A stretch of DNA of 51,878 bases, taken from Octopus sinensis. Taxonomy: Eukaryota. The stretch is from assembly GCF_006345805.1 (NCBI RefSeq), contig NW_021833990.1, forward strand, positions 1 through 51,878, in the 5' to 3' direction. The notes below the pieces were generated by a model that saw nothing but the letters and a program-made list of their open reading frames with translations, made no database searches and was not told the DNA's origin. The position numbers and the translations under genes are program-made. Positions 6,491 through 36,755 of the stretch are shown here, piece after piece. Positions within the stretch are counted from its first letter, which is position 1, and each line of letters opens with the position of its first letter.

Positions 6491-7027
6491 CTCAACTGTT
6501 TGATTAATACACACACATACACACGCACCCAAGCCCATGCATACCTATACATAAACACACACAAACTCAAAAATGGATAGAGAATAATAATACAGAGCGC
6601 CCAGAGGCGTGGATTCGGAGAAGAAAGTCAAACAACATTATAGTTGATATCAAAATAAATTCTTTATTCGATTAGAAACAAAATAAACAAAAATCTGGAT
6701 TAAACCAGACAGAAAGATAAGATTAAGCAATGAAGAATTGTTTGAGATTATATATTTCAATGGTTTCCAGGGGTTGGGTGGTAACAGGATAGTTGTAACA
6801 GGTATTCCTAGGATAACACGCGTCATCAGTACACATAAACATGCTTTAATGTAAGAAATATTCTTTCATGGTTTCAGGCTTCGACTGCCATTTTTAGCAT
6901 GTAAGAAATCCACATGGTAGTTTTCTTGTATGTTTTCATATAATATTATATTTAAATATATGTATGTCTTCTGACTCCTGTTAAGCATGATAGCCACTGG
7001 TAAATAATTATCTAATAATTTATAAAG

Positions 7028-7029
<2 letters not shown>

Positions 7030-7059
<30 letters not shown>

Positions 7060-7315
7060 TGTATGTATGTATGTATGTATGCATGTATGTATGTATGTAT
7101 GTGTGTATGTGTGTATGTATTATGTATGTAAGCGCGTATGTGTGTATCTATGTATGTATGTGTGTATTTGTGTATGTATGTAGGTAGGTAGGTAGGTAGG
7201 TAGGTAGTTAGGTATGTAGGTAGGTAGGTAGGTAATTAGGTAGGTAGGTAGGTAGGTAGGTAGGTAGGTAGGTAGGTAGGTAGGTAGGTAGGTAGGTAGG
7301 TAGGTAGGTAGGTAT
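7030..7315. repeat. (TATG)n followed by (TAGG)n microsatellite
   Basis: Direct inspection. Confidence 0.95.
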
Positions 7316-7487
7316 AGGAGGCGGCTGAGTGTGTTTGTAACTGTGAGAATGCCCAGAACAATTATTATTATTACTACTACTACTATTATGTTACAGAACG
7401 TAGTATAGAATTCATAAAACACTTTGAAGGAATTTTGATTTTATCGAAGAATATCAAATAACTTGATAAACTTCTGCGTGATGTATT

Positions 7488-9451
7488 TCATTCTTCAAAT
7501 AAGTTTATTGTCTGGATCATTTTATCTAAAATGGTTATTGTTAACCTACGATCTGCATTTATCATAGACAATAATTTAGGTATCATAGACGTCATCAATA
7601 TCAAAGTAATCTTTGTGGATGCTGATAAGTGCAACTCTTCTAGACTTATTATATTGTTGCAAGCAAAGAAAAAGGTTACGATTAGAAACAGTTTTACAAT
7701 GGATTTACCAATCTCATTTCTCAATGGAAAACGCTGGTTAACAATTCTCTTAAACAAAGTGGTGTTTATGAATTCTTCCCCATATTTTGACTGAACTAAA
7801 TTTGGACGAAGAATTTTGGTGAGCTTTATGGATTCAAGCAGAATGAAGTCATATAAACTCTGAAATAACTTAATGGTAAAGTTAAAATCAGATAAACAAT
7901 TGGGATTCCATAATAAACGAGGCACAGAAATAATTCACAGACAGAAAATACAGCAAATAAAATTGTAATGGAAACAAAGAGCCAAAGTGTAATGAATCAC
8001 CAGAAAATATTTCTCCTGTAGTAATATAACCAAATTTTCTTTATACGGTTAATCCAAGTATAAATTATTGAATACCAGAAATTTGGGTTTAAAGCAGTAG
8101 AAACATTAGCTTCCATTACTGCATAGAGTAGATCATAATCCTGTTGTGTAGAAACATCTAAATTGCCATACTTCTCTAATAATCTAATATTTTGAATGAG
8201 AAACGTGAAAGTGGATCTTTGATGTAACGTATTATAAGCGATAGTCTCACTTAAACGACTGGGAAGAACGAAGAGGATAAAGTTGAAAGATACGTAACAG
8301 ATTAACCATACAAAGGGACCACCAAAAAAGCCATCAGTATTCTCATAACTTTCTGGGATTCCTAATATCAAGGCGCGATGTCCCAATGGTATACCATCTT
8401 GGAAAAGTATTGCTATTGTTTCATATAAAAAGAAGTAATGCATCAAAAGATCCAGGAAAATTACTGAAAGAGAAAATAGAATACAAAGGAATCTTCTCAG
8501 CCCCGAGGCTAAGAGAGTGGAATGGTGAAAGCAAAACAACCAAGACAGAAAATGAGAGAATGTGTAAATATTATGTTTTCCATTGATCCACTCGGATTCG
8601 TGTGGCAATGTGTTTTTAATTGTAAATAAGAATTCATCGTGAGCAAACAGTGGCAGATTGAGTTGACGGGAATGTGAAGGTAATTTAGCTTTTGATACAA
8701 AACTAATAATTAATGGGGAAAATAGCCACAAAACCCCTCCGAAAATATCTAAATAATTTTAAAAGTTATCATTTTGAATGATTTTTCCTGAACAAATGGA
8801 TTTGGGGCGATAAAGATTACTTTCATTTTTATAGAGTTTACAGCAATAGTTCTTTATAATTTCTCTATTTATGCCAATTCTTCTGTAAGTTTCAAATGAG
8901 AGAGGGCTGTTCTTCTTCATGTCTTGAGACAAATTTATATAAAAACACATGTATCCAGATTCTCCCATTTGCAATTTATCGATAAATAAAATTCTTTTCA
9001 ATTCCTTGAAAATCAAATATATTAAATCGTGTCTCTGAATATTTTGTTTTCCACAAGTGATATTGATATCAATCCTTTGTTTAGCAACGTAGACGTCCAA
9101 CATATTAAAAGTGTGCATTGAAAAATCATAGGAGAAAGTTCTATATAGAGTTAAAGCGCCTGATTTATCTGGAATCCACGTAAAACTCCTCGCATTTGCA
9201 AAATAATCCAATGCCACAGGATTAAGAAGTTCATCAAGTGTCTTGTTTGATAAATGGACTTCAAAATTGAAAACCTCTTTTTCTAATTTCACTAAACGAG
9301 ATAAAATCTCACCGATATTGGGAGGGATTTTAACTTCACAATCATTGCCGAGTTCCTTCGCATCGATGTTTAGTGATATCAGTGTGATAATAAGAATGAT
9401 TGAAAGAATAAGAGAACTGGTTGCTGTTGTTGTCGTCTGCACGGCAGCCAT
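7488..9451 (-). pseudogene. Orphan signal-peptide/ectodomain/multi-pass membrane protein, copy 1 (disrupted)
   Basis: ORFs 8759-9451 and 7997-8731 are in one frame, split by TAA at 8759-8761. The frame continues past TGA at 7997-7999. A ~260-bp deletion relative to copy 2 near 7850 then shifts the C-terminus into ORF 7488-7925. Protein-level conservation with the paralog at 39860-42070. Confidence 0.8.
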
Positions 9452-9461
9452 ATTTGGTTAT

Positions 9462-9482
9462 CTGTAAAAATATGAAAAAATA
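9462..9482 (-). promoter_or_regulatory. 3' splice acceptor just upstream of the start codon of copy 1
   Basis: Minus strand TTTTTTCATATTTTTACAG|ATAACCAAATATG; the paralog has TTGTTTTTCTCTTACAG|AAAACGAAAT at 42082-42098. Confidence 0.55.
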
Positions 9483-10059
9483 GAGCATATTAAGTAATGA
9501 AGATTCAACTCCGTTTCTTTATTTCATAGACATTTGCAATGTTACGAAATAATCATAAGTGTTGTGGTCAATGTATCTGAGAAATCAATGCATTTTTCTG
9601 TTGCCGAGTACCTCTTTTATGGTTAAACATATCCCCGTTTCAAGGTCAATATTTTCTATTCAACGGTTGCAGGAGATTTTCTATTGCATTCGATGCTACC
9701 TAGTTCAAGGTATTAAAATTAGCATCATAACTGAATCAAGTTATATTTGAACTGAAAATACGGAGGTTTTAATGTAGATGGTAAAGATATATGAAATGAG
9801 TATGAATTTCATTTCAAATAGATTCAAAATGGAACGCTAAGAAATGACCATGTATGAGTACGTTTCTAGTAGACCTGAAGATGATAGTAACACAGAGATG
9901 AAACGAAACCCCTTTTGGACTCATGACCGATACATCACACTAGGCTTCGAAAGATATGCATTTACAGTCCAAGAACGGGAGATTGCTACTAAATACCTAA
10001 TCAATAAAAGAGACATTGAAGCCATTGGCGTTCTAAGGGGCAGCTGAAAATATAGATGA

Positions 10060-10400
10060 ATCATCGTCATCATCATCATCGTAGTCGCTGTCATCATCGT
10101 CCTTGTCATCTTCATCATAATCCTCATCATCCTCATCATTTCACGTCTGCTTTTCATGCTGGCATGGTTTGGACGATTTGACAGGAGCTGGCTAGGCAAA
10201 AGCCTGCACAAGGCTTCAGTGTATGTTTTAGCATGGTTTTTAGGGCTGGATGCCCTTCCTAACCAACAAGCCGGAAGAGTGTCAGGTTTGGCAAGATTTT
10301 TACAGCTGGATGCCCTTCGAAAATACCAACCACTTCACAGTGTGGATTGGTGGCTCTTTACCTGGCACCAACATTTGCAGGGTCACCAAGTAATTTGCAA
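10060..10400 (-). mobile_element. Short retroposon/SINE with (ATG)n tail
   Basis: (CAT)n on plus, then a body containing GCTGGATGCCCTTC twice; recalled as a common RTE-type 3' end, not verified. Confidence 0.45.
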
Positions 10401-10769
10401 GACAAATATTCTTTCAGACGGGGAGGGAGCATTGGAAGAAGTGATGTTGTGCCAGATGAAGAGAGGTTGGTGTGACAGAAACAGGTGTGCATTCATGCTA
10501 AGGTAAGCGTAACAAGTCAGATATTGTTGTCTGGGGCAGGCAAGAAAAAGAATGTACCGTCGTACAGGTCGGTTGCCCTGCTGATGGGAATATCTCTTTG
10601 AAAATCAAAAACAAAGAAGGTAATTATGGACAAATGCATTGTAACTTCCAGCTTCTATATCCAGATTATGAATTTGCATTCATTCCAATAATAATCCTTT
10701 CTACATTAGGCCTGAAATATTTGCGGGAGGAGCACCTCGATTACATCGAAAGAGATACTTGAATACACA

Positions 10770-12557
10770 AAAAGCTCAGCCAAGAATTAAGAATTAGTTA
10801 GAATGTTTTAGAAAAATGCAAGATGCTGTGCAATAACGCAGCCCTGTTGAAATGTTTGAGGAAATGCAAACACCAGAAATATATGACTACACAGCGAAAG
10901 AAAACGCTCGATATTCTGCGGCCCGGAAGGATTAAAACCGAAACCTTTTCTGTAGATGAATGGAAACAGTTCTTGGAGTTCTAATATATTCTAGTTATCT
11001 TAGGTTACCCCTCACAAGAAACCACTGGTCAAGTGACGAAGATCTGGGTGTGCCATTAATCAAAACTGCTATTACAAGAAATCCACTCCAGCATCTTTAA
11101 AGCACCATTCACTTCAGAATAACGAAAATTGTGAGGAGAATAAAGATGATAAATGTTATGCAGTTCGTTTTCTCTTTAATATGGTTCAGAATTCCTTCAA
11201 GAGATTCGAAATTTTTGAAAAGAGTCTGTCAGTCGATGTAATGGTGGTCAACTACTATGGGGGCATAATTCACTCAAACAATTTATAAAAGGGAAACCCA
11301 TAAGATTTCGTTACAAATTTTGGGCATTGTGCGGTGTTTCACAATTTTTGTTACAACTTTGATCTGTATTGTGGCAAGAGAATTAAAAAAGGACCCGAAG
11401 ACGATCTTCCACTTGGAAGGAGAGTTTCTTGGAGTGGTAGATGATCCTTGGTCACAATCCGTATATTTTGATAATATATTCACAAAGTATGATCTGTTAG
11501 TGCACCTCGGGCAAATGGGATTTGAAACAACTGCTACGAGAGATAATTGTCTCAAGAGATGTCCTCTAAAGGAAAGAGCATTGATGAGAAAGGAGCCAAG
11601 ATGTTGATATGATTATAGATTTGAAATCAATAATGAAATCTTTGTAGTTAGTTGGCTTGACACTAAATATTTGAGAATTGGGACTAATCCTGATTCAGTC
11701 GAACCCATTTGCAATGTACAACGCTAGAGTAAAGGAAGTAAAAGCAAGGGCAATGTGACCCGACCCCATGTTTGCGGCTCATATAACAATTGCATGGGTG
11801 GAGTTGACAAGCCCGACTGGTTGGTGTCAAAATGTGCAACCTCAATTAGACGCATAAAGTGGTGCAGACCATTGTTGGCTAGAGTTATTGATAGGACTGT
11901 TGTCAATGCATGGACTATTTACAAACTGATCAACGAGGGAAAGGAGGAAACATAAATATTTACTCGATTTCAGGAGATATCTATGCGTTTCATATCTAAA
12001 GCTCTCCACTGCTAAGCAATCTGAACAATAAACAAAGACGATCACACCATCCACACCAATTGCTGACGTTCAATTTGATTTGAAAGGCCATATAATAGCT
12101 AAACGAGATCAGCAACGACGTTGTCAAAATAAGTCGTACAACAGGAAACCACTAAATTATTGTGAAAAGAGCAACGTCACCCTGAGTCTAGACTGTTTTG
12201 GCCCATTTCCTTAAGGCATAGTCTTATAAATTGATTTCTTTCAATCTTTTATATTTTTGCAGTTTTTGTATTTCAGTCTATTATTTCGCTGTATTCTTTC
12301 AAAAACTTTAGCCATTTTACATACAAACTTTAATACCAATAGAATATATTAACATATAACATATGAGGGATTTTGACTTTATGAATATATCACATTGAGC
12401 CAGGGTCCTCTTTATGGGAAACCCGTCTATTTCCATTTCTACTTGAAGTAAAGCAGTTTTTATAATTGATTTTCTTTCATTTTACCCTTTTTTTTCAATA
12501 ATCTTTGAAAATTTAAAAGTAATATTCAAACATTTCATTACTCTGGAATTTAATGGG
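10770..12557 (+). mobile_element. Degenerate piggyBac transposon with right end
   Basis: FLGVLIYSSY..LP..R.HWS.DEDL, LSVD, KQFIKGKPIRF.YKFWALC, VYFDNIFT, YNNCMGGVDKPDW, Cys-rich tail remnant; ends ...AATGGG|TTAA (TTAA at 12558-12561). Confidence 0.9.
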
Positions 12558-12639
12558 TTAAATTATCAAAAACAGAAGAGAGAGAAATATATATATATGT
12601 AACATACATACATGTACCGAGCAATTGTTAATAAAGAAA

Positions 12640-13372
12640 ACTGAGGTGTCAGAGGTGCGAGAGCATAGGAGGAAGTGAGTTTCATTGTGGCTACATTACA
12701 AGAAAACCTTTCACTGTGTTCCCTACTCATTGATGCCAGAAACCCCTCAACTTGCTAAAGTTCCAGTGAGAATAGTCAAAACCATAGAAGAGCTGACTTC
12801 ATCGTAGTCCACTATACTAAAATTAATCACAGAGAATTACTGTATGATCACTGATATCGCAAATGTATATTCTAAGGGAACAGCCACTCTATGATGATGT
12901 TTATACTTTGTGTAAACCCTTCTTCATTCATGTTAAGGAAGTCTGTAGGATATCTCCCTGGTTCACAAGGAAACAGAAATACCAAAATTACACAGTGTTT
13001 CTTTGTGACTGACTTAAAACTTTATGCAAAGAATATGCATGAGATGAAAAAGAGCCTTGAGCTAGTTACAACATCCTCAAAGGATGTAGGGTTGGAGTTT
13101 GGTCAGTATAAATGTTGTCATATGGTTGTGAAAAGGGGGAATACTTTAAACCAAACTAGTAGCATCTCCGTCAATAATTTAACTGTTTTCCCTGTATCTG
13201 GTATCTAGGGGTGGATGAAAATATATCTTACATTGGCAACTGTAACAAAACACCTTTCACTAAACAATATAAACATCGATCATCAAAGCAGTTTATCATG
13301 GACCAATAGCTGGATTGCTACCTCCCACTTTGAAGGGTATGCATTTGCAATGCCGGATCAGGAAATATCAAC
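12640..13372 (+). mobile_element. R4-like RT fragment (CATA-associated family), internally deleted
   Basis: WLHYKKTFHCVPYS, FILCVNPSSFML, FFVTDLKLYAK (YMDD equivalent), DVGLEFGQYKC, WIATSHFEGYAFA; breaks into (CATA)n. Confidence 0.8.
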
Positions 13373-13404
<32 letters not shown>

Positions 13405-13551
13405 CATACATACATACTTACATGCATGCATGCATGCATACACACATACGTACATACATACATACATACATACATACATACATACATAATACATACATAC
13501 ATACATACATACATACATACATACATACATACATACATACATACATACATA
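13373..13551. repeat. (CATA)n microsatellite
   Basis: Direct inspection. Confidence 0.97.
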
Positions 13552-14260
13552 CGGACAGGCTGGCTCGAAGTGACACGTCGCGTATTTAGTATGGAAGACT
13601 ATTTATGGAAGATACGATGAATACTATCTCCATCTTTGAAGCCCTGTTAAATAACTGGTTAATCTCCAGAAGAATTAACTGAAGGAGCCTTTTATTAAAG
13701 ATTGTATTGATTTTCGACTGAAACTTGAATTTAGCATGCAGAGATTTACTAGAAACAACATGGCTGGACTCAACATCAACAACAACACAACCAAGGAACA
13801 GAAGAAAAGCAACAGCTCAACAGATAAACGCAGGACACTCACTTTCGAACTAATGTCTCTGAAACCGGAGCAAAAAGTTGTCAGTGACAAATCCGGAAGT
13901 CAGAAGAGAATAACCAAGAGAAAAACAGTAAACAAAAGAGTTAAGCGAAACCAGGCAGCAGTATACAGTGACATGAGAAGAGGTGCAGTGAACATTACAG
14001 AAACTTCTTCACGAGAAGACAGAGACCTCTTCTGGAGGAAAATATGTTAAACCACAAAAATAATAATAATCGTCTTTCTGAGTCTGTCACTTTGAATGGT
14101 ATACGTAGAACAAATACTGGAAAACAAAATGTTTGCCAATTTCTTAAAAATCTCAGTAATATTTCTCAAACATCGAAATGAATTTCCTCCGCGTTTTCCT
14201 GATTAAGGCAGAACCTAGACAATAGGTGTAGACAGGCTGTACTATCATAACTAAGCTTGA
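13552..14260 (+). mobile_element. 5' part of R4-like element (CATA-associated), deleted derivative of 17167-18625
   Basis: Shares GACACGTCGCGTATTT leader, MAG.NINNNTTKEQ and NQAAVY.DMRRGAVNITETSSRED.D.FW with 17167-18060. Confidence 0.7.
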
Positions 14261-14379
14261 ACATGAGTGTGTGATTTGCAATACTTGTAGAATATATAAA
14301 TATAAAATTGTAAATGCATTTGTAAAGAACATAATGGAATCAGTCAGGGGAATAACCCATTTAAATATACATATATATA

Positions 14380-14542
14380 TATAAACTTTTCTGGGTGTGA
14401 CTAAAGTTGTGAGATGACTGTATGTATAATTTTTTTATTTTTTAAGTTTTAACTTTTATATTTTTAAATTAATTTTATGTATTGCCTTATGTTTTTCACT
14501 ATTTGATTTGCCTAATAGTGGTTTTATCTCTAATTTAATATA

Positions 14543-14550
<8 letters not shown>
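14380..14550 (-). repeat. Head of the AT-rich element also found at 47565
   Basis: Reverse complement TATATTAAATTAGAGATAAAACCACTATTAGGCAAATCA matches 47569-47607. Confidence 0.7.
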
Positions 14551-14590
<40 letters not shown>

Positions 14591-14619
14591 CATACATACA
14601 TATACAGGACAGTGATTAA

Positions 14620-15030
14620 ATGCAGGAGAGTCACCTAAACGCACCATTGCACCCTAAAAAGTTGGTTGTCATTGTATGGTCGTCCGCGAAGGGAGTTATT
14701 CATTATTCATATTTGCAACAAGGGAAAACGGTAACAACAACATCGTATTGCTAGGAAATTGATTGTATGCGTGAGAATTTGAAAAAGAAGCAACCCAGAC
14801 TAGTGAAGAGAGATGGCCCAATTTTGCTCCACGACATTGCACGTGCTCACTCTCCACAAGCTACGGTCCAAATGTTGCAAATCCGGAATTATGAGATTTT
14901 GCAGCATTCTCTGATATCTCTCCAACTAATCATCACTTATTTAAGCATATTGCCTATTTCATAAACAATAAAACATTCGTGAAGAGAGAAGAGGTGATTG
15001 AAGCATTCGGACAGTTTAACACAGCAAAAG
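14620..15030 (+). mobile_element. mariner transposase catalytic-domain remnant
   Basis: LHPKKLVVIVW..KGVIHY..LQQGKTVT..SYC, PILLHDIARAH, DISPTNHHLFK (YSPDLAP.DYHLF equivalent). Confidence 0.85.
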
Positions 15031-15104
15031 ATGAAACTCATACTGCCGAAGAGAAGAAGAGGGCAGAGCAAGGAACAAGAAAACCCACAAAGAAACAAAT
15101 TCTG

Positions 15105-15550
15105 CGGTCAGGAAGGATATATTCGAAACCTTTTCTGTAGATGAATGGAAACAGTTCTTGGAGTTCTAATATATTCTAGTTATCTTAGGTTACCTCTCAC
15201 AAGAAACCACTGGCCAACTGACGAAGATCTGGGTGTGCCATTAATCAAAACTGCTATTACAAGAAATCCACTCCAGCATCTTTATAGCACCATTCACTTC
15301 AATATAACGAAAATTGGGAGGAGAATAAACATGATAAATGTTATGCAGTTCGTTCCCTCTTTAATATGGTTCAGAATTCCTTCAAGAGATCCGAAATTTT
15401 TGAAAAGAGTCTGTCAGTCGATGTAATGATGGTCAACTACTATGGGGGCATAATTCACTCAAACAATTTATAAAAGGGAAACCCATAAGATTTCGTTAAA
15501 GATTTTGGGCATTGTGCTGTGTTTCAGAATTTTGTTACCACATTGATCTG
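15105..15550 (+). mobile_element. piggyBac fragment, duplicate of ~10925-11375
   Basis: Roughly 95% identical by eye to the first piggyBac copy. Confidence 0.9.
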
Positions 15551-15569
15551 TAACATCGATCATCAAAGC

Positions 15570-16865
15570 ATGAAAATATATCTACCATTGGCACCTGTAA
15601 CGAAACACCTGTCACTAAAGAATATTACAGCCAAATAAAGAAACTTTGGACCTCAGAACTTTCTACATTCAATGAACCAGTGTCCCACAATGTGTTTGCA
15701 GTGCCAGTACTAGTCCCAACGTAGACCTCCCCTACCTAAAACGAAAACAAGGTGGCAGAGGCTTAACATCTATCCCAAATGCCTTTCAATGTCGCATCAT
15801 ATCCCTTCGGGAACATATTTTACACACCAATTGTCGACGAGCATCCCTTGACCAAGTTTGCATACATGAAGCTAATAACATCATAAGTCTTGGAAGGCAG
15901 CTCCTTGAGCAACACTCTGTCTGATAAACTAGAATACATGCTCAAATAAGCCGCACGACTCTACTGCAACTTATCATCAGATGAAAGGATGAGCCTATGT
16001 AAGCAGACGACCATGCATGGATATGATAGTAGAAAGCTCCGTGATGATAGTAACATCGATCATCAAAGCTGTTTATTATGGACCACCAGCGGGATTACTA
16101 CCTCCCACTTTGAAGGGTATGCGTTTGCAATCCAGGAATAGGAAATATCAACCAAGTATCTGATGAACAAAAGGGATGGAGATGTAGGTAAAGCATTCAA
16201 ATGTGACAACCGATGCAGAATTTGTGGAGTTCACACTGAAGATATCCCCCACACCTTAAGCAGTTGTCCGAAAATACCATCACCTTAAATGTCACATGAC
16301 GTTGTAGCTAGGACACTCTATAAGGAAATCCGTGGTAAGCATAATCCCGAGAAGAATGAATAAGAATCCACAGTATGGTAGAAGTCATAGCCACACGTAA
16401 CAAAAAAGAATACTGATGGAATGTCCCAGTGTAGACCACAAAAAACTGTAATCCCAACAGACCTGAGAGAATGATTTGAGATAGAGAAGAGAAACTGTGT
16501 ACAGTTGTGGCAATTAGCTGCCCAGCAGATGTGAACATAAAGCTGAAGATCAATGAAAAAGAGTGTATCTATGCTGAACTATTGAGAAATCAGCAGTTTC
16601 TCTATTCAGATTACAAGTTCAGGTTTATACCTGTAATTATTGGGACTCTGGGACGTGTTACACAATGCCTAAATACCAATCTAGAGAAATTAGACTTCTC
16701 AAAACCAGAGAGGAGAAAGCTAATTTGAAGACTACAGATACGACCCATCACTAGAACTGTAAAAGTCTGAGAAACTTTCCAGAAGTTTATCATTAAATAT
16801 ATATGAGCATTTCTAGATATGTAACTATGTGCTTGAGAAAACGTACATAAAACATACAAATCTGC
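15570..16865 (+). mobile_element. 3' half of R4-like non-LTR element (CATA-associated)
   Basis: YLKRKQGGRGL, TSHFEGYAFAIQE, CRICGVHTEDIPHTLSSC (CCHC), AISCPADVNI..K..EK...Y, FIPVIIGTLG; short 3' UTR runs into (CATA)n. Confidence 0.85.
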
Positions 16866-17166
16866 ATATACATACATACATACATACATACATACATACA
16901 TACATACATACATACATACATACATACATACATACATGCATGCATGCATGCATGTATACATACATACATACATACATACATGAATGTATGCATGCATACA
17001 TACATACATACGTACATACATACATACATACATACATGCATGCATGCATTCCTGCATACATACATACCTACATACATACATACATACATACATACATACA
17101 TACATACATACATACATACATACATACATACATACATACATACATACATACATACATACATACATA
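16866..17166. repeat. (CATA)n/(CATG) microsatellite
   Basis: Direct inspection. Confidence 0.97.
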
Positions 17167-18625
17167 CTTACGAACTCCAAGCGACACGTCGCGTATTTGA
17201 TGTGGCAGACTATTCATCGAAAATATGATGATTACTATCTCCAACTCTGAAGCTAAAACTACCAGCCTTATCAAATAACTGGTTAATCTTTAGAAGTATT
17301 AACTGAAGGAGCCTTTTATTAAAGATCGTATTGATTTTCGACTGAAACTTGAATTTAGCATGCAGAGATTTACTACAAACAACATGGCTGGACACAACAT
17401 CAACAACAACACAACCAAGGAACAGAACAAAAACAACAGCTCAACAGATAAACAGATTCTTTCTAGCTTTAGTTAGAGAAGAAACCGTAACCACAAAACT
17501 AATTTTTTTTCTTGGATTTATGAATTGAGGACAGATTTATTAATTGTTATAGAAGAGCTAAACAAAACCCTTTTGTTGGATGTTTGGTCAGATTGGAACC
17601 ATACATGGACGATCTGCATCCACAACTAAATCATTTTACTGCGAAAGTAGCAATAGTAGTCAGGGCTATATAGCGGTGCCCCGACTAAAAATTTTCAAGA
17701 AGAAATAACTTTGATTTCGAAGCACTCTCTCGAAGAGAGAGAATTCTATATCAAAGTAAGCAAAAGACTGCCAGACACGGTATTAAAAGTTCACCAAGAA
17801 GAAGAGAAGAAGGAGATAGAAGTGATGTTTTGAAATAGCAAAAAGAGGACATTCAATTACGAACTGACCACTCTCAAACAGGAGCTAAAAGATGTCAGTG
17901 AGAAACCTCGAAATCAGAAGAGAATAACCAAGAGAAAAACAGTAAACGAAAAAGAAAAAATTAACCAGAACCAGGCAGCAGTATACAGAGATATTGAGAG
18001 GAGGAGTAGTGAACATCACAGAAACTTCTTCACGAGAAGACATAGACTTCTTCTGGATGAAAAGGTGTTAAACCACAAAAATAACAATAACAAACAGAAA
18101 AGGAAAGGCAACAGCATTTATAGGGATTCCAACCCCAGAGAGAAAAAGAAAACCAGATTGATTCATGCTTTATCCTCAGACTGACACCTCGTCTCACATT
18201 AAACTCATTCAAAGAAAACAAAATGCTAAAAACAACAGCCAAATATCTCTCAAATCCTTCCTTCAATTCTTAGAAAGGAGATACATTGGTGGACAATGCA
18301 TGTGAATAGAGAGGGTGGTGGTCAAGGTTAGAATGTCTTGTATCATAGATCTACTCCCGCAACACTGACATGTTGCTAAACCAAGAAAATAATAATTCTC
18401 TTACCTTTTGCGAGTCTCTCGATTTCAATGATATACGTACAACAAATACTGGGAAACAAAAAGTAAGCCAATTCCTGAAAAGCATCAATAATACTTCTCA
18501 ACCAACAAAACAACCTTCCTCTGTGCTTTCCTGATCAAAACAGAACCCAAGTGGTGGTAGACAGACTGTATTGTCAGAACTATGCCTGAATAGGGGTAAA
18601 CTATTTCCTGTGCATGTGAAATATA
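17167..18625 (+). mobile_element. 5' half of R4-like element (CATA-associated), degenerate
   Basis: Starts immediately after (CATA)n; N-terminal motif LLNCYRRAK..., NQAAVYR..., FFW, then RT domain 1-2 remnants. Confidence 0.75.
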
Positions 18626-18715
18626 TAAATATATGTGTAAAATTGTAAATCTATATCTGTAAATAATGCATTAACATCATTCATGCGGATAACTCAGTTT
18701 TATACATGCATGCAC

Positions 18716-19080
18716 AGTAACCCGAGAAGCTTTAGTCACCCCTGCACATTTCAATAGGCTTATTACTTTTAGTAAATTGGATTTTCCAAAATGTTATTTT
18801 TAACACTAGAAAACTCAAACAATCTTGTCTGTGTAATCATTTCTCTTGACAGTCATGTCCAAATTCATCTTCAGATGCCAAATAAAAATGACAAAGAAGA
18901 AGCATGAGAAACGAGCACAGATTGAAATTTGGTAAAAGAATGGAGAAATGTGTGAGTAAGACAGCAGCTGATTGGTCTGTAACTCCATCAACTGTTTCAA
19001 GAATTCAGAAAAGAATTGAAGAAGGTTCATAAAGAAGGCTTCACCTACAAGAAGTAGCCGAGAATGTTCCCTGACATCAA
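18716..19080 (+). mobile_element. Tc1-like element left end plus transposase N-terminus remnant
   Basis: CAGTAACCCGAGAAGCTTTAGTCACCCCTG resembles a Tc1 TIR start; EKRAQIEIW...WSVTPSTVSRIQKRIEEGS; homologous to 1-55. Confidence 0.6.
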
Positions 19081-19094
19081 ACTCAGCCAACCTA

Positions 19095-19930
19095 AAGTTA
19101 ATACATCAGAAATTATGATACTGTTAGTTTAGACAATCTAACTGAAATAGAAGGTTAAGAATAGATTAGTTAGGTTTTTTTCGTAGAATGAGCTTTCACA
19201 TTGTTTTTGACGATGAGTTAACTAAGGCTAACTTCTTAGATATTACTCTTAATTTACAAAATAACTCGTACTTCCCATACACCAAACCTTCCACAAATAT
19301 CAATTATATTAGTCCTTCCAGTAATCTCGCTAGGGCAATTAATAAGAATTTAGTTAAAAACATTTCAGTTAGATTGTCTAAACTATTCGCCAATGTTGAC
19401 ATTTTTAACGACAAGGCAGAATTTTTATAACTCTGCTTTAGTTAAAGCAGGATATAAAGAAAAAGTTACATACATTGATTCTGCTCAATTTCGTCCTTCA
19501 TCTACTGTTCAAGACAAGAAATCTAGTTGTAATAATAAGTGTGATTTTAATTCTAATATTGTAAACAACACAAAACAATAAAATTCCTGTACGGGGTAAG
19601 GGAGGCAAGCGTTATTTAAGGCCATTTTTCCACTCTAGAGGTATTTCACTGTTCTTTAAAGATAATACCGCTTACAATTTGAATGTTACTAGGAAAACTG
19701 TCTGGTTTGTTATTTCGTATGGAAAACAAATTAAATCTAATCTTCCTTTACAATTCCGTGATGTGGTTGCTAGGAACTTTCCAAAAAATTATTAATTCTC
19801 TTATAGTTAGAGTTGCCTTCTCCAACACAAAAAATCTTTCACAAATTATATCTTCTCATAATACCAGTCTGCTAAATAAAAGTCCATTTTCTGGGAGTTA
19901 CAACATTAATTTTATAATTCCAGCCCCTCA
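19095..19930 (+). mobile_element. Penelope-like RT thumb/linker remnant
   Basis: NFLDITLNLQNNSYFPYTKP..NINYI..SSN, YNSALVKAGYKEK, VWFVISY.KQIKSN...ARNFPK, VAFSNTKNLSQIISSHN are typical PLE post-RT motifs. Confidence 0.8.
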
Positions 19931-21530: not shown

Positions 21531-24500
21531 GCCGACTACGGCTGCTATAATGGTACGATTATAATTGTAACGGCAATGATGGCCGTCTCCCCACGAGCCA
21601 ATCAAAGCTAAAAAATGATAACATTATCGTAGCACCAAAATGTTTTTGGAAACTAAAAGGAAAACTAAATCAGTATACCAAATCGCTTGTCCTATGGTTA
21701 ATCTGGAAGCGCGTCCCCCAGGGAAGAGCCAGCCTGGGATCGAAAAGTCATCAACTGGCACAAACTCTTCTCCGAATACGGACATGGATGGTCACTTGAA
21801 CGGGAAATCCCCCAACTCGAGCCCTCCAAGTTCACCACCACAACCACCACAGAAAGAAAAATGTAAGCGGAACAAATGGACCCGAGAAGAGTATAAAGAA
21901 GTAATATACGCTTATTACTATGCATTAGGTAGGCCATCTCAAGAGAGACACACCGCAAACTCTTACAGTATATGGGGAACACGGAATCAAGACAGTAGGC
22001 CCTATTTGGACGAGAACAAATTAGCAAATGTGAGGAGGGATATCTTTAGAAATAACAGACTCACAGACAGTGAAATAAGTGCGATCAAGCACGCAACGGA
22101 AAATGACATAAATATAAGACACAAAGGAAATGAAGAATCAGATGAACAGTATAGCCCGCCACGAGGCTTAATTGAAAGACTGCCATCTGACCAAAGTACG
22201 CAAAGGCCTGAAGATACAAGAAATTCTATTGTACCTGTTAAAGATAGCCAGGAAAACGAAAAAACAACAGTAACTGAAGATCTCGCATTTGCTGAAGAAC
22301 ACAGAGAGTCTATGGCAGAAATGAGGCAGAAAATCCTGAATACGCTTGAAGTTGTAAGACATACAAGTATGAATGATAGAGAACCGCTTCATAAACTCTC
22401 AAATACAAACCAAAATAAAAAACAAATCCAAATTGGCAACTATGTAACAAATGAAATAATAAGAGAATTAAAACCTGATTTTACTGAGTTAAATGAAATT
22501 ATTTACGCTTCTGCTAGGGCAATTGAAACCAGCTGTATGCCCCCGAAAAAACAAAGAAAACCAAACCTGGGAAGAAATCAAACCTGGAGAAGTGAAATTG
22601 AAAAAGAGATTGAATTTATGAGAGGGGAAATATCAATATTAAATGAACTAATATGTGGAAATGATGTAAGATCCAGAACAGGAAGAAAGATGAAGAGAAA
22701 ATTTGGATCCTCACCAAGAGAAGAACTGATATCAATAAAAGAAACGCTGAAACAAAAAGTCCAAGCAAAAGCCCAAAGAATACGAAGATTTGAGAAGAGA
22801 AACAAGTTTTACAAGCAAAATAAGCTGTTCACATCCAATGCCAAAAAATTCTACAGAGAAATAGGGAAGGAGAAAGTAACCGTTAAAGACCCCCTCCCAT
22901 GGAAGAAGTTCAAAACTTTTGGGAAAGGATTTGGAGTGACAAGAAGACGTACAACATAAATGCAGACTGGATTATACAAACTGAAGGATCCTACCAAAAT
23001 TTACAACAACAAGCATGGGAAGACATCACAATAGCAGACCTAAGAAAGGCACTTACGAAGGCCCATAATTGAAATCCCCCGGTAAAGATAGGGTACCGAA
23101 TTTCTGGCTCGCATCGCTCCCGTGCGCACACGGTAAGCTAGTTCAGCTGCTCAATGGAATTTTGAGAGACCCAAAGAAAACACCTGAATGGTTAGCAAGT
23201 GGCATTACTTACCTACTCTCAAAGAATAACGAAACCAACCTTCCAAAAAACTATCGGCCTATAACCTGTCTATCCACCACGTATAAAATCCTAACATCTA
23301 TCCCGGCGGAGAAAACATATGCATTCATGGAGAAGAACGATATTTTCCCCATTGAACAAAAAGGGTGCCGCCGAGGCTCTTACGGATGCAAAGATCAACT
23401 GCTAATCAATCGTATGATCCTTGAGAACTGTCACAACAAGCGCAGAAATCTCAGCACCGCATGGATTGACTATAAAAAGGCCTTCGACAGTATACTGCAT
23501 CCATGGATCTTGAGATCGCTGGACATCTTTAAAATTTCCCCTGTGATTTCAAACTTCCTGAAGCACAATATGTCGTTGTGGAATACGAATCTCCAATTAT
23601 ACCACTCTAATGGAGTACTTGCCTCAGAAAATATAAACATCAACTGTGGAATTTTTCAAGGTGACTCACTTTCACCTTTAATATTCTGCATAGCCCTAAT
23701 ACCCCTTACAAGTGAATGAAACAGAACAGGGTATGGGTATAAAATTGCCAATAAAAAAATAAGCCGTCTATTTTATATGGATGACTTAAAACTTTATGGT
23801 AAAGACAATAATGAACTTGAAGGCCTATTGCGCACCGTGAAAGCATTCAGCGATGACATCGGGATGGAGTTTGGACTTGAGAAGTGTGCCAAGGCCACTT
23901 TCCAGAAAGGGAAAGTGAAGACCACAAATTCAGTCGTGTTAGATGTTGACACAGTCATAAGAGAGCTTGAGCAAGAACAGACATACAAATATTTAGGGAT
24001 AAATGAAGGCTCTGGTATTCAGCATGCAAGCATGAAAGAGAAAATCAGGAAGGAATGTTATAGGAGAGTTCGTGCAGTCCTGAAATCTGAAATAAATGCA
24101 CGTAACAAGGTGTTAGCTATAAATTCCTTAGCAGTTCCAGTTGTTACTTATAGCTACAATGTGTTGAACTGGAATATGAGTGAAGTAAAGAATATAGATA
24201 GAAAAATACGCAAGCTGCTGAGTTGTAATAGGATGCACCACCCAAAGGCAGACGTAGATCGCCTTTACCTTCCCAGAGCCCAAGGAGGTCGAGGCCTGAT
24301 CCAATTTGAACTAGCTTACAAAACAACCACAATTGGACTGGCCAAATATCTCGAAATATCGAATGACTGGATGCTAAAGCTCGTGGAAAATCACGAGAGA
24401 CGAAAGAAGCTTCATTCTATCATCAAGGAAAGCAAAACATTTGCTATTGATCTCGTGCAGGATACCCAAATTGAACAACCCGAGGGAAGTACGGCAACTA

Positions 24501-25505
24501 TTGTTGCAAAGAAGGTGAAAATGATGGCAATGAAAAAAGCGCACGAGTAATTGGCTGATAGGTGGGAGGAGAAACCTCTGCACGGCAAATATGTGACCCG
24601 CAGCAAACAAGCTGATGTTGACCAGAAGCAAACCCATCAGTGGCTGCGGAGCTCAGGGCTAAAAGCAGAGAGCGAAGGTTTCATCCTGGCTGCTCAAGAC
24701 CAAAGCCTATTAACCCGGAACTACCAGGCCAATGTGATGAAAAATGGAGCAGACCCAAAATGCCGATTCTGCAACGACATGATTGAAACAGTGGACCACC
24801 TAATCTCTGGATGTAAAGTCTTAGCACCAGTGGAGTATAAATTAAGACATGACAGAGTTGGCTAATATCTCCACTGGCTAATAAGTCGGCATTACAATAT
24901 CAAAACTGCCGACAAGTGGTATAATCACCACCCTGAGGTTGTAACTGAAGGAGAAAATGTAACCATTCTGTGGGACTTTCCAGTACATACAGACCGAACC
25001 ATCAAGGCCAATAAACCAGATATTGTTGTAAAAGACCAAAACAATAAAGTTTGCTTATTGATCAACATGAGCATCCCCTGTGATCAAAATATCTCAGCGA
25101 AAGAGTTTGACAAGCTCAGAAAATATAAAGACCTACTCATTGAAATTGAGAAAATGTGGCATCTCAAGGCGGTTACAATACCAGTGATCGTAGGAGCACT
25201 AGGAATGATCAAGAAGGGAACCGAAAATTATATGAGAATGATCCCTGGCTTACCATCCCTGCAAGAAGTGCAAAAGATTGTCTTAACTGGTACATCACAC
25301 GTATTGAGAAGAGCATTGTCGATGTGAGAACTGTTGCTGCTCATGTATTTTAATTTAACTTTAAAATTAAAAAAAAAAAAAAAAATTAACGAACTACTGA
25401 GTTTGGTTTAATGGCCTACCAATATACACTATGAGTTTCTTTGCCCTAGGAGTCGGGAAGACACTCGGCAAGAAATGGAAGAAAATTTGAAAGAAGAAAA
25501 AAAAA

Positions 25506-25784: not shown

Positions 25785-26432
25785 AATATATATATAATAT
25801 AATATATATATATATATATATATATGATATAATCTAATCTAATCTAATCTAATATAATATAATATAATATAATATATAATATAATAATATAATATAATAT
25901 AGTGTAATATAATGTAATATAATATAATATATAATATAATATAATATAGTATAATATAATGTAATAATATAATAATATAATATATATAATATAATATAAT
26001 ATAATATAGTATAATATAATATATAATATATATAATATAATATAGTATAATATAATGTAATATAATATAATATAATATAATATAATATAATATAATATAA
26101 TAATATATATAATATAATATAGTATAATATAATGTAATATAATATAATAATATAATATAATATAATATAATATAATATAATATAGTATAATATAATATAA
26201 TAATATAATATAATATAATATAGTATAATATAATGTAATATAATATAATATAATATAATATAATATAATATAATAATAATAATATAATATAATATAATAT
26301 AATATAGTATAATATAATATAATATAATAATATAATATAATATAATATAATATAATATAATATAGTATAATATAATATAATATAATAATATAACATAATA
26401 TAATATAATATAGTATAATATAATGTAATATA
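25720..26432. repeat. (TA)n followed by (AATAT)n pentanucleotide array
   Basis: Direct inspection; AATCT, AGTAT and AATGT variants. Confidence 0.97.
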
Positions 26433-26652
26433 AGCCATCTTTCCAAATGTTATCTTCATCGAAACAAGACGGCTTATTCTGTCCCTCTCATAACCTGTCT
26501 CCTTAATGCGTTCAAAATAATTTTTCGTTTCTCATTGTGTTCAACTATTTTTTTGATGTCCTGTACCCATATATGCATGTATACATACATATAGATGTAG
26601 GTATTACATATATGTATGTATATATGCATATATATATATATTATTTATATTA

Positions 26653-29648: not shown

Positions 29649-32600
29649 TTTTTCCTTCTTTCTTCAAATTTCTTCCGTTTCTCGCCGAGTGTTTTCCATA
29701 CACCTAGGGAAGAGAAGCTCATTGTATGCATTCCCAGATTACACACGCAAATTCACAGATAAAATATGTATTTAAAAATTAATAAATAAATAAATTCATG
29801 GATGGATGTTATTTTCAAAGCGATAGTGCTCTTCTCAGTACATGAGCCGTTCCAGTTAACACGATTTTTTGCACTTCCTTGTAGGGATGGTGAGCCTGGA
29901 ATCATTTTCAAATAGGTTTCAGTACCTTTTTTTATCATTCCTACAGATCCTACAATCACTGGTACTGTAGTCACCTCGAGATGCCACATTTTTTCAGTTT
30001 CTATTAGCAGGTCTTTATATTTACTAATCTTGTCAAATTCTTTCGCCACTATATTGTGATCACAGGGAATACTCTTGTCAATTAATAAACACATCCTTTT
30101 TGTCTGATCTATTATAATAATATCCGGTTTATTAGCTTTTATAGTCTTGTCGGTCCTCACGGGGAAGTCCCATAGAATCGACACATTTTCTCCCTCAGTC
30201 ACAGCTTCAGGATGATGTTTATACCATTTGTCAGCGGTTTTGATTTTATAATGCCACATATTGTCCAATGTAAATACTGGCCGACTCTGTCATGTCTTGC
30301 TTTATATTCTGAAGGTGCTAAGACTCTACACCCTGAGATTAGGTTGTCTGTTGTTTCAGTCTCCTCGTTACAGAATCAGCATTTTGGGTCAGCTCCATTT
30401 TTCATCACATTGGCTTGGTAGTTCCGGGTTAATAAGCTTTGGTCTTGAGCAGCTAATATGAAACCTTCACTCTCTGCTTTTAGCCCTGAGCTTCGTAACC
30501 ATTGGTGCGTGTGTTTCTGGTCGACATCAGCTTGTTTGCTACGGGCCACGTACTTGCCATGGAGAGGTTTCTGTTCCCATCTGTTTCCTTGCAGCTGCAG
30601 TTGGCGTATTTCCTTCAGCCTGATCAATCTGGTGTGTATCTAAGATCAGCAGCGAATTGTTTGCTCTCTTTGAGAATAGAGTGAAGTTTTTTCGGTCTTT
30701 CATGTTTTTCAACAAGTTTTAGCATCCAATCGTTGGTTGTTTCAAGGTATTTGGCCAGTTCGATTGTGGTGGTTTTGTACATAAGTTGAAGCTGGATCAA
30801 ACCTCGACCTCCCTGAACTCTGGGAAGGTAAAGGCGATCCACGTCTGCCTTTGGATGGTGCATCTTATTACAAGTCAGTAGCTTGCGGATTTTTCTGTCA
30901 ATTTTCATTATTTCACTGGTATTCCAGTTAAGCACATTGAAGCTATATAGAACAACTGGTACTGCTAAGGAATTTATGGCTAACACCTTATTATATGCAT
31001 TCAGCTCAGACTTCAGGACTGCTCGAACTCTTCTATAACATTCCTTCCTAACCTTCTCTTTCATGCTTTCATGCTGGATACCAGAGCCTTCATTTATTCC
31101 TAGGTATTTATAGGTTTGTTCCTGCTCAAGTTCCTTTATTACTATTTCGACATCTAATTCGATTGAACTAGACTTTACCAATTTCCTTTTCTTAAAAGTG
31201 GCTTTGTCACACTTTTCAAGGCCAAACTCCATCCCGATATCATCACTGAATCCTTTCACAGTATGTAATAATGCTTCAAGCTCTTCATCATCTTTGCCAT
31301 ATAGCTTTAGTCATCCATATAAAATAGATGGCTTATTTTTCTGTTGTCAATTTTGTAGCCATATCCTGTTCTATTCAGTTCACTTGAGAGTGGTATAAGT
31401 GCAATGCAGAAAATCAGGGGTGAAAGTGAGTCACCTTGGAAATTTCCACAGTTTATGCTAATGTTGTTTGAGTGCAATACTCCCTTAGAATGATATAATT
31501 GGAGCTTCGTGTTCCATAGTGACATATTACTTTAAAAATCTGATATCACAAGAGAAATTTTGAAAATGTACAGCGATTTCAGAATCCACGAATGTGGTAT
31601 GCTGTCAAATCAATCCATGAAGAGCTGAGATTTCTGCGCTTGTTATGGCAGTTCTCAAGGATCATGCGATTAGTTAAGAGCTGAACTTTGCATCCATATG
31701 AGCCTCGTCTGCATTGGGAATGAGGTTATTCTCTTCCATAAACGTATATGTTTTCTCTACTAGAATAGATGTCAAGATCTTCTAGGTAGTAGATAAACAT
31801 GTTATAGGCCGGTAGTTTTGGGGTCTTTCGTTTTGTTATTTTTGGGAGGAGGTAAGTAATACTATTTGCCATCCAATGTGGTGTTTTTCCGGGTCTTTCA
31901 TAATACTATTAAATAGTATTACTAACATTTTGTGTGCGGACGAGAGTGATGAGAGCCAGAAATTTGGTACTCTATCAATACCAGGGGATTTCCACTTATG
32001 AGCCTTCGTTAGTGCCCTCCTTAGGTCGGCGATTGAGATGTCTTCCCATACCTGTTCTTGTAGATTTTTGTAGTCATCTTGGGTGCGTTTGATCCACTCT
32101 GCATTTTCATTGTATGGTTTCTCATCACTCCAGATCCCCTTCCAAAAGTGTTCAACTTCTTCCATTAGGGGTGGATTTTCAATGGTTATTTTTTCTTTCC
32201 CTATTTCCCTGTAAAATGATTTAGCATTGGATTTGAACATCTTATTTTGTTTGTAGCATCTGATTCTTTTCTCAAGTCTGCGTATTCTCTGAGCTTTTGC
32301 TTGAACTTTTTGTTTAAGTGTTTCTTTCGCTGACATTAGTTCTTCTCTTGTTGAGTGTCCATATTTTCTCATATCTTCCTGCCTTTTCTTGATCTTACAT
32401 AATTTCCAGAGATTAGCTCAGTTATATTGATATCTCCCTTCGCAATTATTCAATTTCAGTTTCAATTCTACTCCTCCAATTTGATTTTCTCTTCGAATTT
32501 GGTATTGTTGGCTTTTTGGGTGTTAAACAGCGTCTTTCGATTACCTTAACGACAGAGTAAATAATTTCATTTAATTTATTAAGATCAGGTTTTAGTTGTT

Positions 32601-33390
32601 GTATGATTTCCTGTGTAACGCAGTTGCCAATTTGTGTTTTATGTTGGTGTGCATTTGAGAGTTTATGGAGTGGTTCCCTATCATTCATAGTTGTATGGCC
32701 TACAACTGCAAGCTCATTCAGAACTTCTTGCTTCATTTCAATGATAGATTTTCTGTGTTGTTCAACAAACATGAGGTCTTCAAATTCTGTTTCGACATCA
32801 TTTTCCGGGCTGTTTTTTCTAGGGTCATTATATTTTCCTACTTCTTCAGGATCTTGAGTCGTTTCGGCAGATGGTCGCCTTTCAGTCAATGCTTGTGGCC
32901 AACATTCCTCTCCTCAGCTTCGTTATTTCTTTCCTGACTTATATTTAGGTCATTCTCTACCACTTATTTAATAGAGGTTAATTCTGCATCTGTGAGTCTG
33001 GTATTTCTGAAGATATCTCTTCTAACATTTGCTAAACTGCTTTCATCCAGGTTTGGTCTGCTAGCTGGATTCCGGCTCCTCCTTGGGCTGGTCTACTTAA
33101 TGCAAATTAATAAGCATATATCTTCTTTATATTCTTCCCAGTTCCATTTAGTTCTTTTACTTTTTTGATTTTCTGGTCGTTGTGGTGGTGAACTTTAGGG
33201 GCTTAATTTGGGACAAATCCCGTTTAAGTGACCTTCCAGGTTCGTATTCGGGGAAGATATTCAGCCATTTGAAAATTTTTCGCCATCAAGCTGGCAGCCT
33301 CCTGACGGACGCGCTTCCTGTATAACCATTGGGCAACCGATTCGGTGTACTGTTAGAAATTTTCTTTTCAAGTAAAGTTAAATTATTATT
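29649..33390 (-). mobile_element. Near full-length R4/Dong-clade element, second subfamily, several frameshifts
   Basis: Minus ORFs give KETLKQKVQAKAQRIRR, WKSPGIDRVPNFW, FQGDSLSPL, LFYMDD, RLYLPRVQGGRGL, KPDIII..IDKSIPCD; roughly 80-85% nt identity to 21640-25327; 3' end abuts (TAA)n. Confidence 0.93.
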
Positions 33391-33475: not shown

Positions 33476-33925
33476 TCATTTATCATCATTAGCAGCCCCA
33501 GTAGTTATAGCAGCAGCAATATCATTGTCAGCAGCTGCAGCGGCAGTGGTAGTAGCAATAGTAATGACCGCAGCAACAGCATCAGCAGCAGCAGTGGTAG
33601 TACCAGTAGTAGTAGTAGCAGCGGTGGCAGCAGCAGCAAAGCAGCAGCAATGGTAGCAATAGTATAGTAGCAGCAACAGCAACAGTAGGGCCGTGGTTGT
33701 AGCAGCAGCATGTAGCAGCAGCAGGAGCAGTAGCAGCAGCAATGGTAGCAATGTAGTAGTAGCAGTGACAGCAGCAGCAGTGGTAGCAGCAGCTACAGCA
33801 GCAGTAGTAGTGGCCGTAGTTGTAGCAGCAGCAGCAGTAGTAGTAGCAGCAGCAACAGCAGTAGTGGCAGCAGCAGCAGTAGCAGTTGTAGCAGCAGTAG
33901 TAGTAGTAGTAGTAGTAGTAGTAAA
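33476..33925. repeat. Imperfect (GCA)/(GTA) trinucleotide tract
   Basis: Direct inspection. Confidence 0.9.
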
Positions 33926-33941
33926 TGTGGCTCATGTAATC

Positions 33942-34665: not shown

Positions 34666-34667
34666 CT

Positions 34668-35843
<1,176 letters not shown>

Positions 35844-36388
35844 GAGTGAGAGAGCAGTGCATGCCATCAAAGTGACACTGGGGTAAAATATACGAAGCCC
35901 AATATACCCATCATGACTACCCGTCTGATAAAGGTACACCAGGCACATGCATCACAACCATATGTGCGCGACATGGTGATCGCATATCAAGATAAACAGC
36001 ACATGACCTTGCAGGTGGGGCCCAATTAGAATTTTCTTCAGGTTGAGTAGCCCATCCCGCTCAAACGGTCCCTGAATAAGGGTTGTTTAAGGATGTTGAA
36101 AGAACTACCCATGTTTCCAGAGGTGAACTATTCAAACCCCAAAGAATCCCTCTCAACACATGGCTATGATGCTCCCCCACTACTTCTGCTCATGATCAGA
36201 GATGCACATATCGTCAGCCACTAAGGGACATGCTCAACTGGTTACGGTCAAACAACTGTCAAGCAAATCTGTGGTATTGAGCAGAATATTTGCTGTAGCC
36301 CTCTTTTATACCAAGACAAAACAATGTACATGATACACTTCCAATCAGTTAAGATCAGAAGCCATGAGAGCCACTGCCTGGTACTGCA

Positions 36389-36390
<2 letters not shown>
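35844..36390 (-). mobile_element. Non-coding element B, copy 2
   Basis: As for 34949-35501. Confidence 0.8.

Positions 36391-36755
<365 letters not shown>

Follow-up and report, generated by a model that had tools for sequence, protein, structure and literature searches.

Two disabled copies of a gene for a multi-pass membrane protein are present in a window of 51,878 nucleotides (nt) of octopus DNA, the window being the whole stretch that was analyzed here. Copy 1 is located at 7488–9451 and copy 2 at 39890–42070, both on the minus strand. Among described systems, the gene family resembles STRA6/RBPR2 (PF14752; PDB 5SY1), multi-pass proteins of about 700 amino acids (aa) with roughly 9–10 helices, some of them unusually long. 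In contrast to STRA6/RBPR2, the family described here carries a signal peptide and a 200-aa ectodomain with six cysteines, and no match in sequence, profile or fold was found. STRA6 is not known to have a cleavable signal peptide or a cysteine-rich ectodomain of 200 aa.

The SID-1/SIDT proteins of the CREST superfamily are built in a similar way, with a signal peptide, a large N-terminal ectodomain and about 11 membrane helices within about 780 aa. The ectodomain fold of SID-1 consists of two beta-sandwiches, whereas the ectodomain of the present family is predicted to be mixed alpha/beta. Homology to SID-1 was rejected: no match to Pfam SID-1_RNA_chan was present, and Foldseek returned 9l8m_A with E = 4.9 and a TM-score of 0.08.

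With respect to gene structure and evolution, the family shares features with the vertebrate olfactory receptors (OR) and T2R as well as with the expanded lophotrochozoan genes similar to nicotinic acetylcholine receptors (nAChR), including the octopus chemotactile receptors. These are a single coding exon, arrangement in clusters, lineage-specific expansion, frequent pseudogenes and a ratio of nonsynonymous to synonymous substitution rates (dN/dS) that is raised yet below 1. However, the proteins of the family are neither seven-transmembrane (7TM) G protein-coupled receptors nor subunits of a pentameric ligand-gated channel, and no match to Pfam 7tm or Neur_chan was found.

Based on our analysis we identify the two loci as pseudogenes of an orphan lophotrochozoan membrane-protein family, with a rough probability of 0.8. 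This value covers the identification and not the functional proposal made further below. An earlier reading of 7488–9451 without database searches (here referred to as the sequence-only reading) had described a receptor-like gene with signal peptide, ectodomain, cysteine motifs and a C-terminal block, and all of these were present in copy 1. Its minus strand contains three pieces of open reading frame (ORF), read from the sequence of 7488–9451. The first, ORF A (8762–9451, minus strand), encodes 230 aa starting with the signal peptide MAAVQ...SLNIDA, cleaved before KELGN, and continuing into a hydrophilic ectodomain of about 200 aa. Its cysteines are C38, C133 (CGK), C169 (YMCF), C203-C204 (YCC) and C220. 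Past the TAA at 8759–8761 the same frame stays open across three hydrophobic segments until the TGA at 7997–7999, and beyond this it encodes one more helical hairpin, ending near 7854. ORF A and the C-terminal block (...LFKRIVNQRFPLRNEIGKSIVKLFLIVTFFFACNN...LILMTSMIPKLL...) do not share a frame, and the block terminates at 7488. The features of both copies are as follows.

9462–9485, minus strand: putative 3' splice acceptor (polypyrimidine tract and AG), found by sequence inspection, 11 nt 5' of the ATG
9359–9451, minus strand: start codon and signal peptide (MAAVQTTTTATSSLILSIILIITLISLNIDA, then KELGN), codons 1–31; hydropathy peak at residues 9–27 in the O. sinensis protein P0001, cleavage site judged by eye
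8762–9358, minus strand: ectodomain, codons 32–230, with six family-wide cysteines and five N-X-S/T sequons; maps to the confidently modelled alpha/beta domain of a bivalve homolog
8759–8761, minus strand: premature stop 1, TAA at codon 231 (TTT, Phe, in O. sinensis), directly before the first membrane helix
8000–8758, minus strand: codons 232–484 in the frame of ORF A, with the first three hydrophobic helices, the SRLRR and GGP motifs, GIPLGHR and the NPNFW...R helix
7997–7999, minus strand: premature stop 2, TGA at codon 485 (CAA, Gln, in O. sinensis)
7854–7996, minus strand: codons 486–532, helical hairpin with the near-invariant membrane-embedded Glu506 (GAA at 7934–7936) and the YYGxP motif
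7853–7854, minus strand: junction of a 259-nt deletion, ortholog codons 533–619 gone, TATA microhomology at the breakpoints (blastn of the O. sinensis region L001, alignment and junction sequences)
7488–7853, minus strand: codons 620–740, C-terminal block, which comprises the final two hydrophobic helices plus the native stop codon and is no longer in the reading frame of the upstream part
39890–42070, minus strand: copy 2, detected by blastn and tblastn, the older of the two pseudogenes; its nearest relative is LOC115218430 (P0012) of O. sinensis

The top database match of copy 1 was Octopus sinensis LOC118765918 (P0001) with 96% identity across the first 541 codons. This gene is a single uninterrupted ORF of 2223 nt on chromosome CM016859.1 and encodes 740 aa, exactly the length that the sequence-only reading had estimated by joining both copies. 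In blastn comparison with L001, the O. sinensis genomic region holding LOC118765918, positions 9647–11601 of L001 matched 9780–7851 of the window with 96.8% identity and positions 11858–19649 matched 7853–1 with 97.7% identity. Since the surrounding DNA is collinear with L001, the window represents the orthologous locus in a closely related species. Copy 1 is a unitary pseudogene, namely the orthologous locus of LOC118765918 disabled in the window genome. Alignment to the intact ortholog revealed F231stop (TTT/TAA), Q485stop (CAA/TGA) and the frameshifting deletion of 259 nt, by which three hydrophobic helices are taken out.

Small indels were absent from the 1964 nt of coding sequence (CDS) of copy 1. 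In the 3' flank 1.33 indel events/kb were counted at 98.8% identity, and about 2.6 events would be expected in 1964 nt. Codon differences from O. sinensis amounted to 15 synonymous and 20 non-synonymous ones; apart from the lesions, they comprised 15 synonymous and 18 missense changes. Taken together, the lack of small indels and these counts suggest that the gene was under constraint until recently and that its death is recent. At each premature stop, two bases are different from the O. sinensis codon, and the paralogs there encode R or K (position 485) and L or V (position 231). Thus, each stop may be one step away from an ancestral CGA or TTA, the O. sinensis codon having changed as well.

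It is very unlikely that these lesions are sequencing or assembly artefacts and that the locus encodes an intact 740-aa protein. The copy 2 region does contain many 1-nt indels, with 10 indel events in 497 nt of its 5' flank when compared to O. sinensis, and this may in part be due to assembly quality. Copy 1, however, is free of 1-nt indels, and two stop codons that each differ by two bases from O. sinensis, together with a clean 259-nt deletion with microhomology, are atypical errors. Furthermore, the 230-aa protein P0023 of another genome terminates at codon 231 as well and has five lineage-specific residues in common with the window, which argues against a sequencing error. The stop at codon 111 of copy 2 is likewise found in the O. 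sinensis assembly.

The location of the first stop bears on another alternative, namely that copy 1 is shortened and not dead, the 230-aa ORF being retained as a secreted soluble protein such as a decoy or binding protein. The stop is situated at the boundary of ectodomain and membrane part, with about 3 residues remaining to the first membrane helix. Upstream of it, the putative splice acceptor, the start codon, the signal peptide and all of the six cysteines are intact. Besides P0023 with its identical end, the O. bimaculoides prediction P0019 comprises only the ectodomain as well. However, as the decay downstream is recent, survival of ORF A needs no selection. Within the 230 residues, 8 amino acids differ from O. 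sinensis, none of which points to special constraint, and the other ectodomain-only predictions may be annotated pieces of pseudogenes. We therefore consider a retained secreted form unlikely and regard copy 1 as a pseudogene; neither copy in the window would make the full-length protein.

Copy 2 is located 32 kb upstream of copy 1 on the same strand and shares 77–89% nucleotide identity with it (blastn E = 0 to 1e-127). The sequence-only reading had placed two tandem paralogs within 7488–9451. The second copy does exist, but it lies outside this interval and can be called tandem only in a loose sense, the two copies having the same orientation in one cluster without being adjacent. The arrangement matches that in O. 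sinensis, where LOC115218430 precedes LOC118765918 by 26 kb on the same strand. Copy 2 and LOC115218430 have in common a TAA at codon 111 (41741–41743 in the window). On the window side, copy 2 additionally carries a 1-nt insertion in the first ATG, further stops and about 15 indel events, which are mostly frameshifting (1, 2, 5 or 10 nt). Because of the stop shared with O. sinensis and the number of indels, copy 2 is the older of the two pseudogenes. Both copies are thus decayed as had been proposed, copy 1 by two stops and one deletion and copy 2 by indels and stops.

In O. sinensis the frame of LOC115218430 is open apart from the codon-111 stop, and the gene is annotated as an N-truncated protein of 569 aa. 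All frameshifts of the copy 2 region are on the window side. Between window 39890–42560 and positions 9028–11907 of the O. sinensis region L003 we counted 2.9% substitutions and 6.8 indel events/kb, compared to 1.2% and 1.33/kb in the copy 1 region. This excess may be due to residual function in O. sinensis, to non-orthology or to the local quality of the assembly. Together with more than 12 kb of surrounding sequence, LOC115218430 is present twice in near-identical form in the O. sinensis assembly, at 213.36 Mb (L002) and 205.01 Mb (L003) of CM016859.1. The two regions are 8 Mb apart and arose either from a segmental duplication of very recent date or through duplication in the assembly.

Neither a third copy nor an intact paralog was detected by tblastn in the 52-kb window. 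The expectation that intact paralogs would be found in the flanking DNA did not hold there, and the closest intact paralogs of the O. sinensis ortholog are 86 kb and 300 kb distant from it.

The DNA between the copies contains remnants of non-LTR (long terminal repeat) retrotransposons of the LINE (long interspersed nuclear element) type and low-complexity DNA. Three related, broken non-LTR copies in both orientations, at 21640–24865 (plus strand), 29753–32889 (minus strand) and 38257–39494 (minus strand), occupy much of this space, and their ORFs match Pfam RVT_1 and zf-RVT. A 66-aa ORF at 11755–11955 (plus strand) matches the C-terminal end of the piggyBac-type DDE_Tnp_1_7 (E = 3.5e-5) and is probably a transposon fragment. 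Long microsatellite and low-complexity tracts are located at 6866–7422, 25839–26459 and 33476–36907, the last of them (about 33.5–36.9 kb) with several kb of trinucleotide-like runs. A repeat of the TACC/TATG type begins about 70 nt 3' of the stop codon of copy 1.

To which proteins the two copies are related was analyzed by sequence and profile searches. Chance similarity is excluded, because homologs were obtained at E = 0 to 1e-33. The word-indexed search returned 21 proteins, all of them from Octopus (sinensis, bimaculoides, vulgaris) or Argonauta. A profile search of 1.84 billion cluster representatives (clusters at 50% identity) yielded 132 representatives at E≤1e-3, 110 at E≤1e-10 and 19 at E≤1e-30. 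Most of these matches were 730–860 aa in length and aligned across almost their whole length. Named bivalve members were found in Mytilus, Ostrea, Mercenaria, Mya, Ruditapes, Mactra, Potamilus, Sinanodonta, Pecten, Ylistrum and Dreissena. A search led by a bivalve sequence returned 45 bivalve members, while the 78-sequence alignment with the octopus protein in first place gave octopod proteins only. Other named members belong to the gastropod Haliotis, the brachiopod Lingula and the annelid Owenia.

No coral or other non-lophotrochozoan name occurred among the named members, and many matches come from unnamed assemblies. As far as the named members show, the family is restricted to Lophotrochozoa. 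An expansion in corals and molluscs had been suggested in the sequence-only reading. This was correct for molluscs, and some bivalves have dozens of copies; the non-molluscan members were Lingula and Owenia and did not include a named coral. Apart from octopod proteins labelled STRA6, all named members are annotated as 'uncharacterized' or 'hypothetical'. Literature searches with STRA6 plus octopus or mollusc, with the locus identifiers and with descriptive terms returned no description of the family. In O. vulgaris, the predicted protein P0195 (1010 aa) combines gelsolin-type domains (PF00626) with a fragment of the family; it is probably a chimeric gene model with a family pseudogene in it.

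The family genes of O. sinensis are uninterrupted ORFs, and in Mercenaria and Potamilus one exon holds all but the first 5–13 codons. Therefore, the single large coding exon, as proposed from the sequence, is a family-wide trait and not a feature of an octopus retrocopy. Given the acceptor-like motif at 9462–9485 and the short upstream exon of the bivalve homologs, we infer that copy 1 has an upstream exon as well, which would be non-coding or very short. A corresponding ...ctcttacag motif is present 5' of copy 2 and of its O. sinensis relative.

Six O. sinensis genes are located on CM016859.1 at 205.016, 205.042, 205.128, 205.342, 208.475 and 208.612 Mb. In Mercenaria a 94%-identical tandem neighbour was found 20 kb away, and family members of Potamilus have consecutive locus tags. 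Clustered paralogs from repeated duplication are thus seen in O. sinensis, in the window, in Mercenaria and in Potamilus. Among five octopus genes the dN/dS (Nei-Gojobori) ranged from 0.37 to 0.56. It was 0.40 for P0007/P0009, a putative ortholog pair of O. sinensis and O. bimaculoides with 85% identity, and in the comparison of P0001 and P0002 it amounted to 0.34 for the ectodomain and 0.49 for the membrane part. These values point to a real but relaxed purifying constraint on the family. Pseudogenes of differing age, the young copy 1 and the older copy 2, stand beside such constrained intact genes. Turnover of the family by duplication and loss (birth-and-death), as had been proposed, is supported by both the clusters and the pseudogenes. 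The putative receptor or sensor role proposed along with it derives from the architecture.

The essentially intronless structure, the multiple copies, the retroelement debris around them and the fact that the similarity of the two window copies stops within about 100 nt of the ORF would also fit envelope-like or membrane proteins encoded by a transposon or an endogenous virus instead of host genes. The chance of this is close to negligible. Orthologs occupy syntenic positions across Octopus species, and the same gene structure including the upstream exon is found in three phyla. The duplicated unit consists of the ORF with about 100 nt on either side and contains no reverse transcriptase, integrase or transposase. 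Additionally, there was no match in BFVD (best E 0.98), and the dN/dS of 0.4 between putative orthologs is that of constrained genes. The sequence-only reading had named a match to a characterised family or to a transposon protein, or a lack of constrained intact homologs, as evidence against it, and none of these was encountered. The ORFs are hence treated here as host genes.

The orphan status of the family was confirmed at the level of domains, sequences and folds. Pfam hmmscan at E≤10 gave scattered noise and no match for the window pieces, for 19 individual members (9 octopod and 10 distant) and for the 52 members of alignment A4. Searches of the PDB chains with the family profiles A1 (10 members) and A2 (78 members) at E≤10 likewise gave noise only, with a lipase at E ~0.8. 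These results agree with the sequence-only reading, in which no named domain had been recognised. From a 10-sequence octopod alignment, AlphaFold modelled the O. sinensis ortholog poorly, and the model was not usable (predicted local distance difference test, pLDDT, 43.6). In contrast, the bivalve member P0062 with a 52-sequence alignment was modelled with a pLDDT of 85, a predicted TM-score (pTM) of 0.80 and 455 residues above pLDDT 90. With this model as the query, none of the Foldseek matches was significant, whether in the PDB (best E 0.57, TM-score about 0.1) or in BFVD (best E 0.98). The family is an orphan, with no relative detectable in sequence or fold in the available tests.

This also concerns the name 'Receptor for retinol uptake STRA6', which UniRef gives to the O. 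bimaculoides proteins P0005 and P0008. Both STRA6 and the octopus proteins are multi-pass proteins of about 700 aa with long helices, and a divergent STRA6-type retinol-uptake receptor could be suspected from this. However, Pfam RBP_receptor (PF14752) was not matched at E≤10 by any of the more than 60 members scanned, and no STRA6 chain was found in the PDB with profiles A1 and A2 at E≤10. STRA6 was also absent among the 50 listed of 67 Foldseek matches in the PDB, with TM-scores of about 0.1, and the signal peptide and the cysteine-rich ectodomain mentioned above are not known from it. The distribution differs as well, since the orphan family is lophotrochozoan while STRA6, together with RBP4, was reported missing in the annelid Platynereis (PMC5821490). 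We consider a STRA6-type receptor highly improbable, and the name on P0005 and P0008 is probably a propagated mis-annotation.

The architecture of the orphan family was derived from the P0062 model, mapped onto the octopus protein via A4, and from the Kyte-Doolittle hydropathy of P0001, in which a signal peptide and about 10 hydrophobic segments were seen. It comprises the following parts.

Residues 1–31: signal peptide
Residues 32–230: alpha/beta ectodomain, composed of about nine strands and three main helices; it has six conserved cysteines and five N-X-S/T sequons
Residues 228–272: long first membrane helix
Following the first membrane helix: partly disordered loop, ending in a conserved S-R-x-x-R
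Residues 310–351 and 379–395: helices flanking a G-x-P-x-G / GGP loop
Residues 399–488: region of about 90 aa with the N-P-x-F-W...R helix
Residues 490–535: helical hairpin with C-x-x-E-x-x-L-C-x-x-Y-Y-G-x-P
Residues 543–590 and 592–635: two very long helices
Residues 639–649: beta-hairpin
Residues 663–690 and 697–718: two further helices, then a C-terminal amphipathic helix

In the model, several membrane helices are 42–49 residues long. Each of the six ectodomain cysteines is kept in 71–78 of the 78 members, and they probably form three disulfides. At position 506, within the hydrophobic hairpin, 76 of the 78 members have E and the other 2 have D. Furthermore, R469 is present in 76/78 and W459 in 77/78, and P397 is invariant. 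In P0011, P0016 and P0020 the loop joining the first and second membrane helices is the site of a variable, disordered expansion, a Pro/Ser/Gln/Glu-rich tandem repeat of about 24 aa (...SPNSLEPNHQQSTNEEVHLEILPS...) in up to about 9 copies.

A strictly conserved membrane-buried acidic residue together with a conserved arginine is typical of membrane domains that handle ions or substrates. Intact proteins of the family would be membrane glycoproteins located at the cell surface with the ectodomain outside, and the buried Glu/Arg pair would handle an ion or a polar substrate. Because of this pair, the disulfide-stabilised ectodomain and the receptor-like genome dynamics, a ligand-responsive transporter or channel-like surface protein may be proposed, although we regard this as a rather doubtful guess. 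With slightly more weight, but still tentatively, the intact relatives could be seen as a new structural class. It would combine a disulfide-rich ectodomain found only in Lophotrochozoa with a domain of about 10 helices that contains the buried Glu/Arg pair, in a fold absent from solved structures. As a ligand-gated transporter, channel or sensor of a new kind, it would have expanded independently in octopuses and bivalves.

Several observations weigh against the interpretation given here. The divergence of copy 1 from O. sinensis is slightly higher in the CDS (1.9%) than in the 3' flank (1.2%), for which gene conversion or relaxed constraint are possible reasons. The lesions were read in one window genome and may be fixed or polymorphic. 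The confident model is that of a bivalve member with 17% identity to the octopus protein, and as Foldseek covered the PDB and BFVD, a cellular protein of the same fold whose structure is unsolved is possible. Additionally, the 399–488 loop carries three N-glycosylation sequons, yet it is cytoplasmic according to a simple helix count. The functional guess, finally, draws only on architecture and conserved residues.

By themselves the two loci are ordinary pseudogenes, and their interest lies in the family, which comprises at least 132 clusters at 50% identity in three phyla. The STRA6 label could misdirect work on lophotrochozoan retinoid signalling and merits correction. With no Pfam model, no similar solved structure, a charged pair in the membrane and receptor-like dynamics, the family is a candidate for a new class of transporters or receptors in molluscs. 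The recent loss in one Octopus species, set against the intact ortholog in a sister species, provides a natural knockout for comparison.

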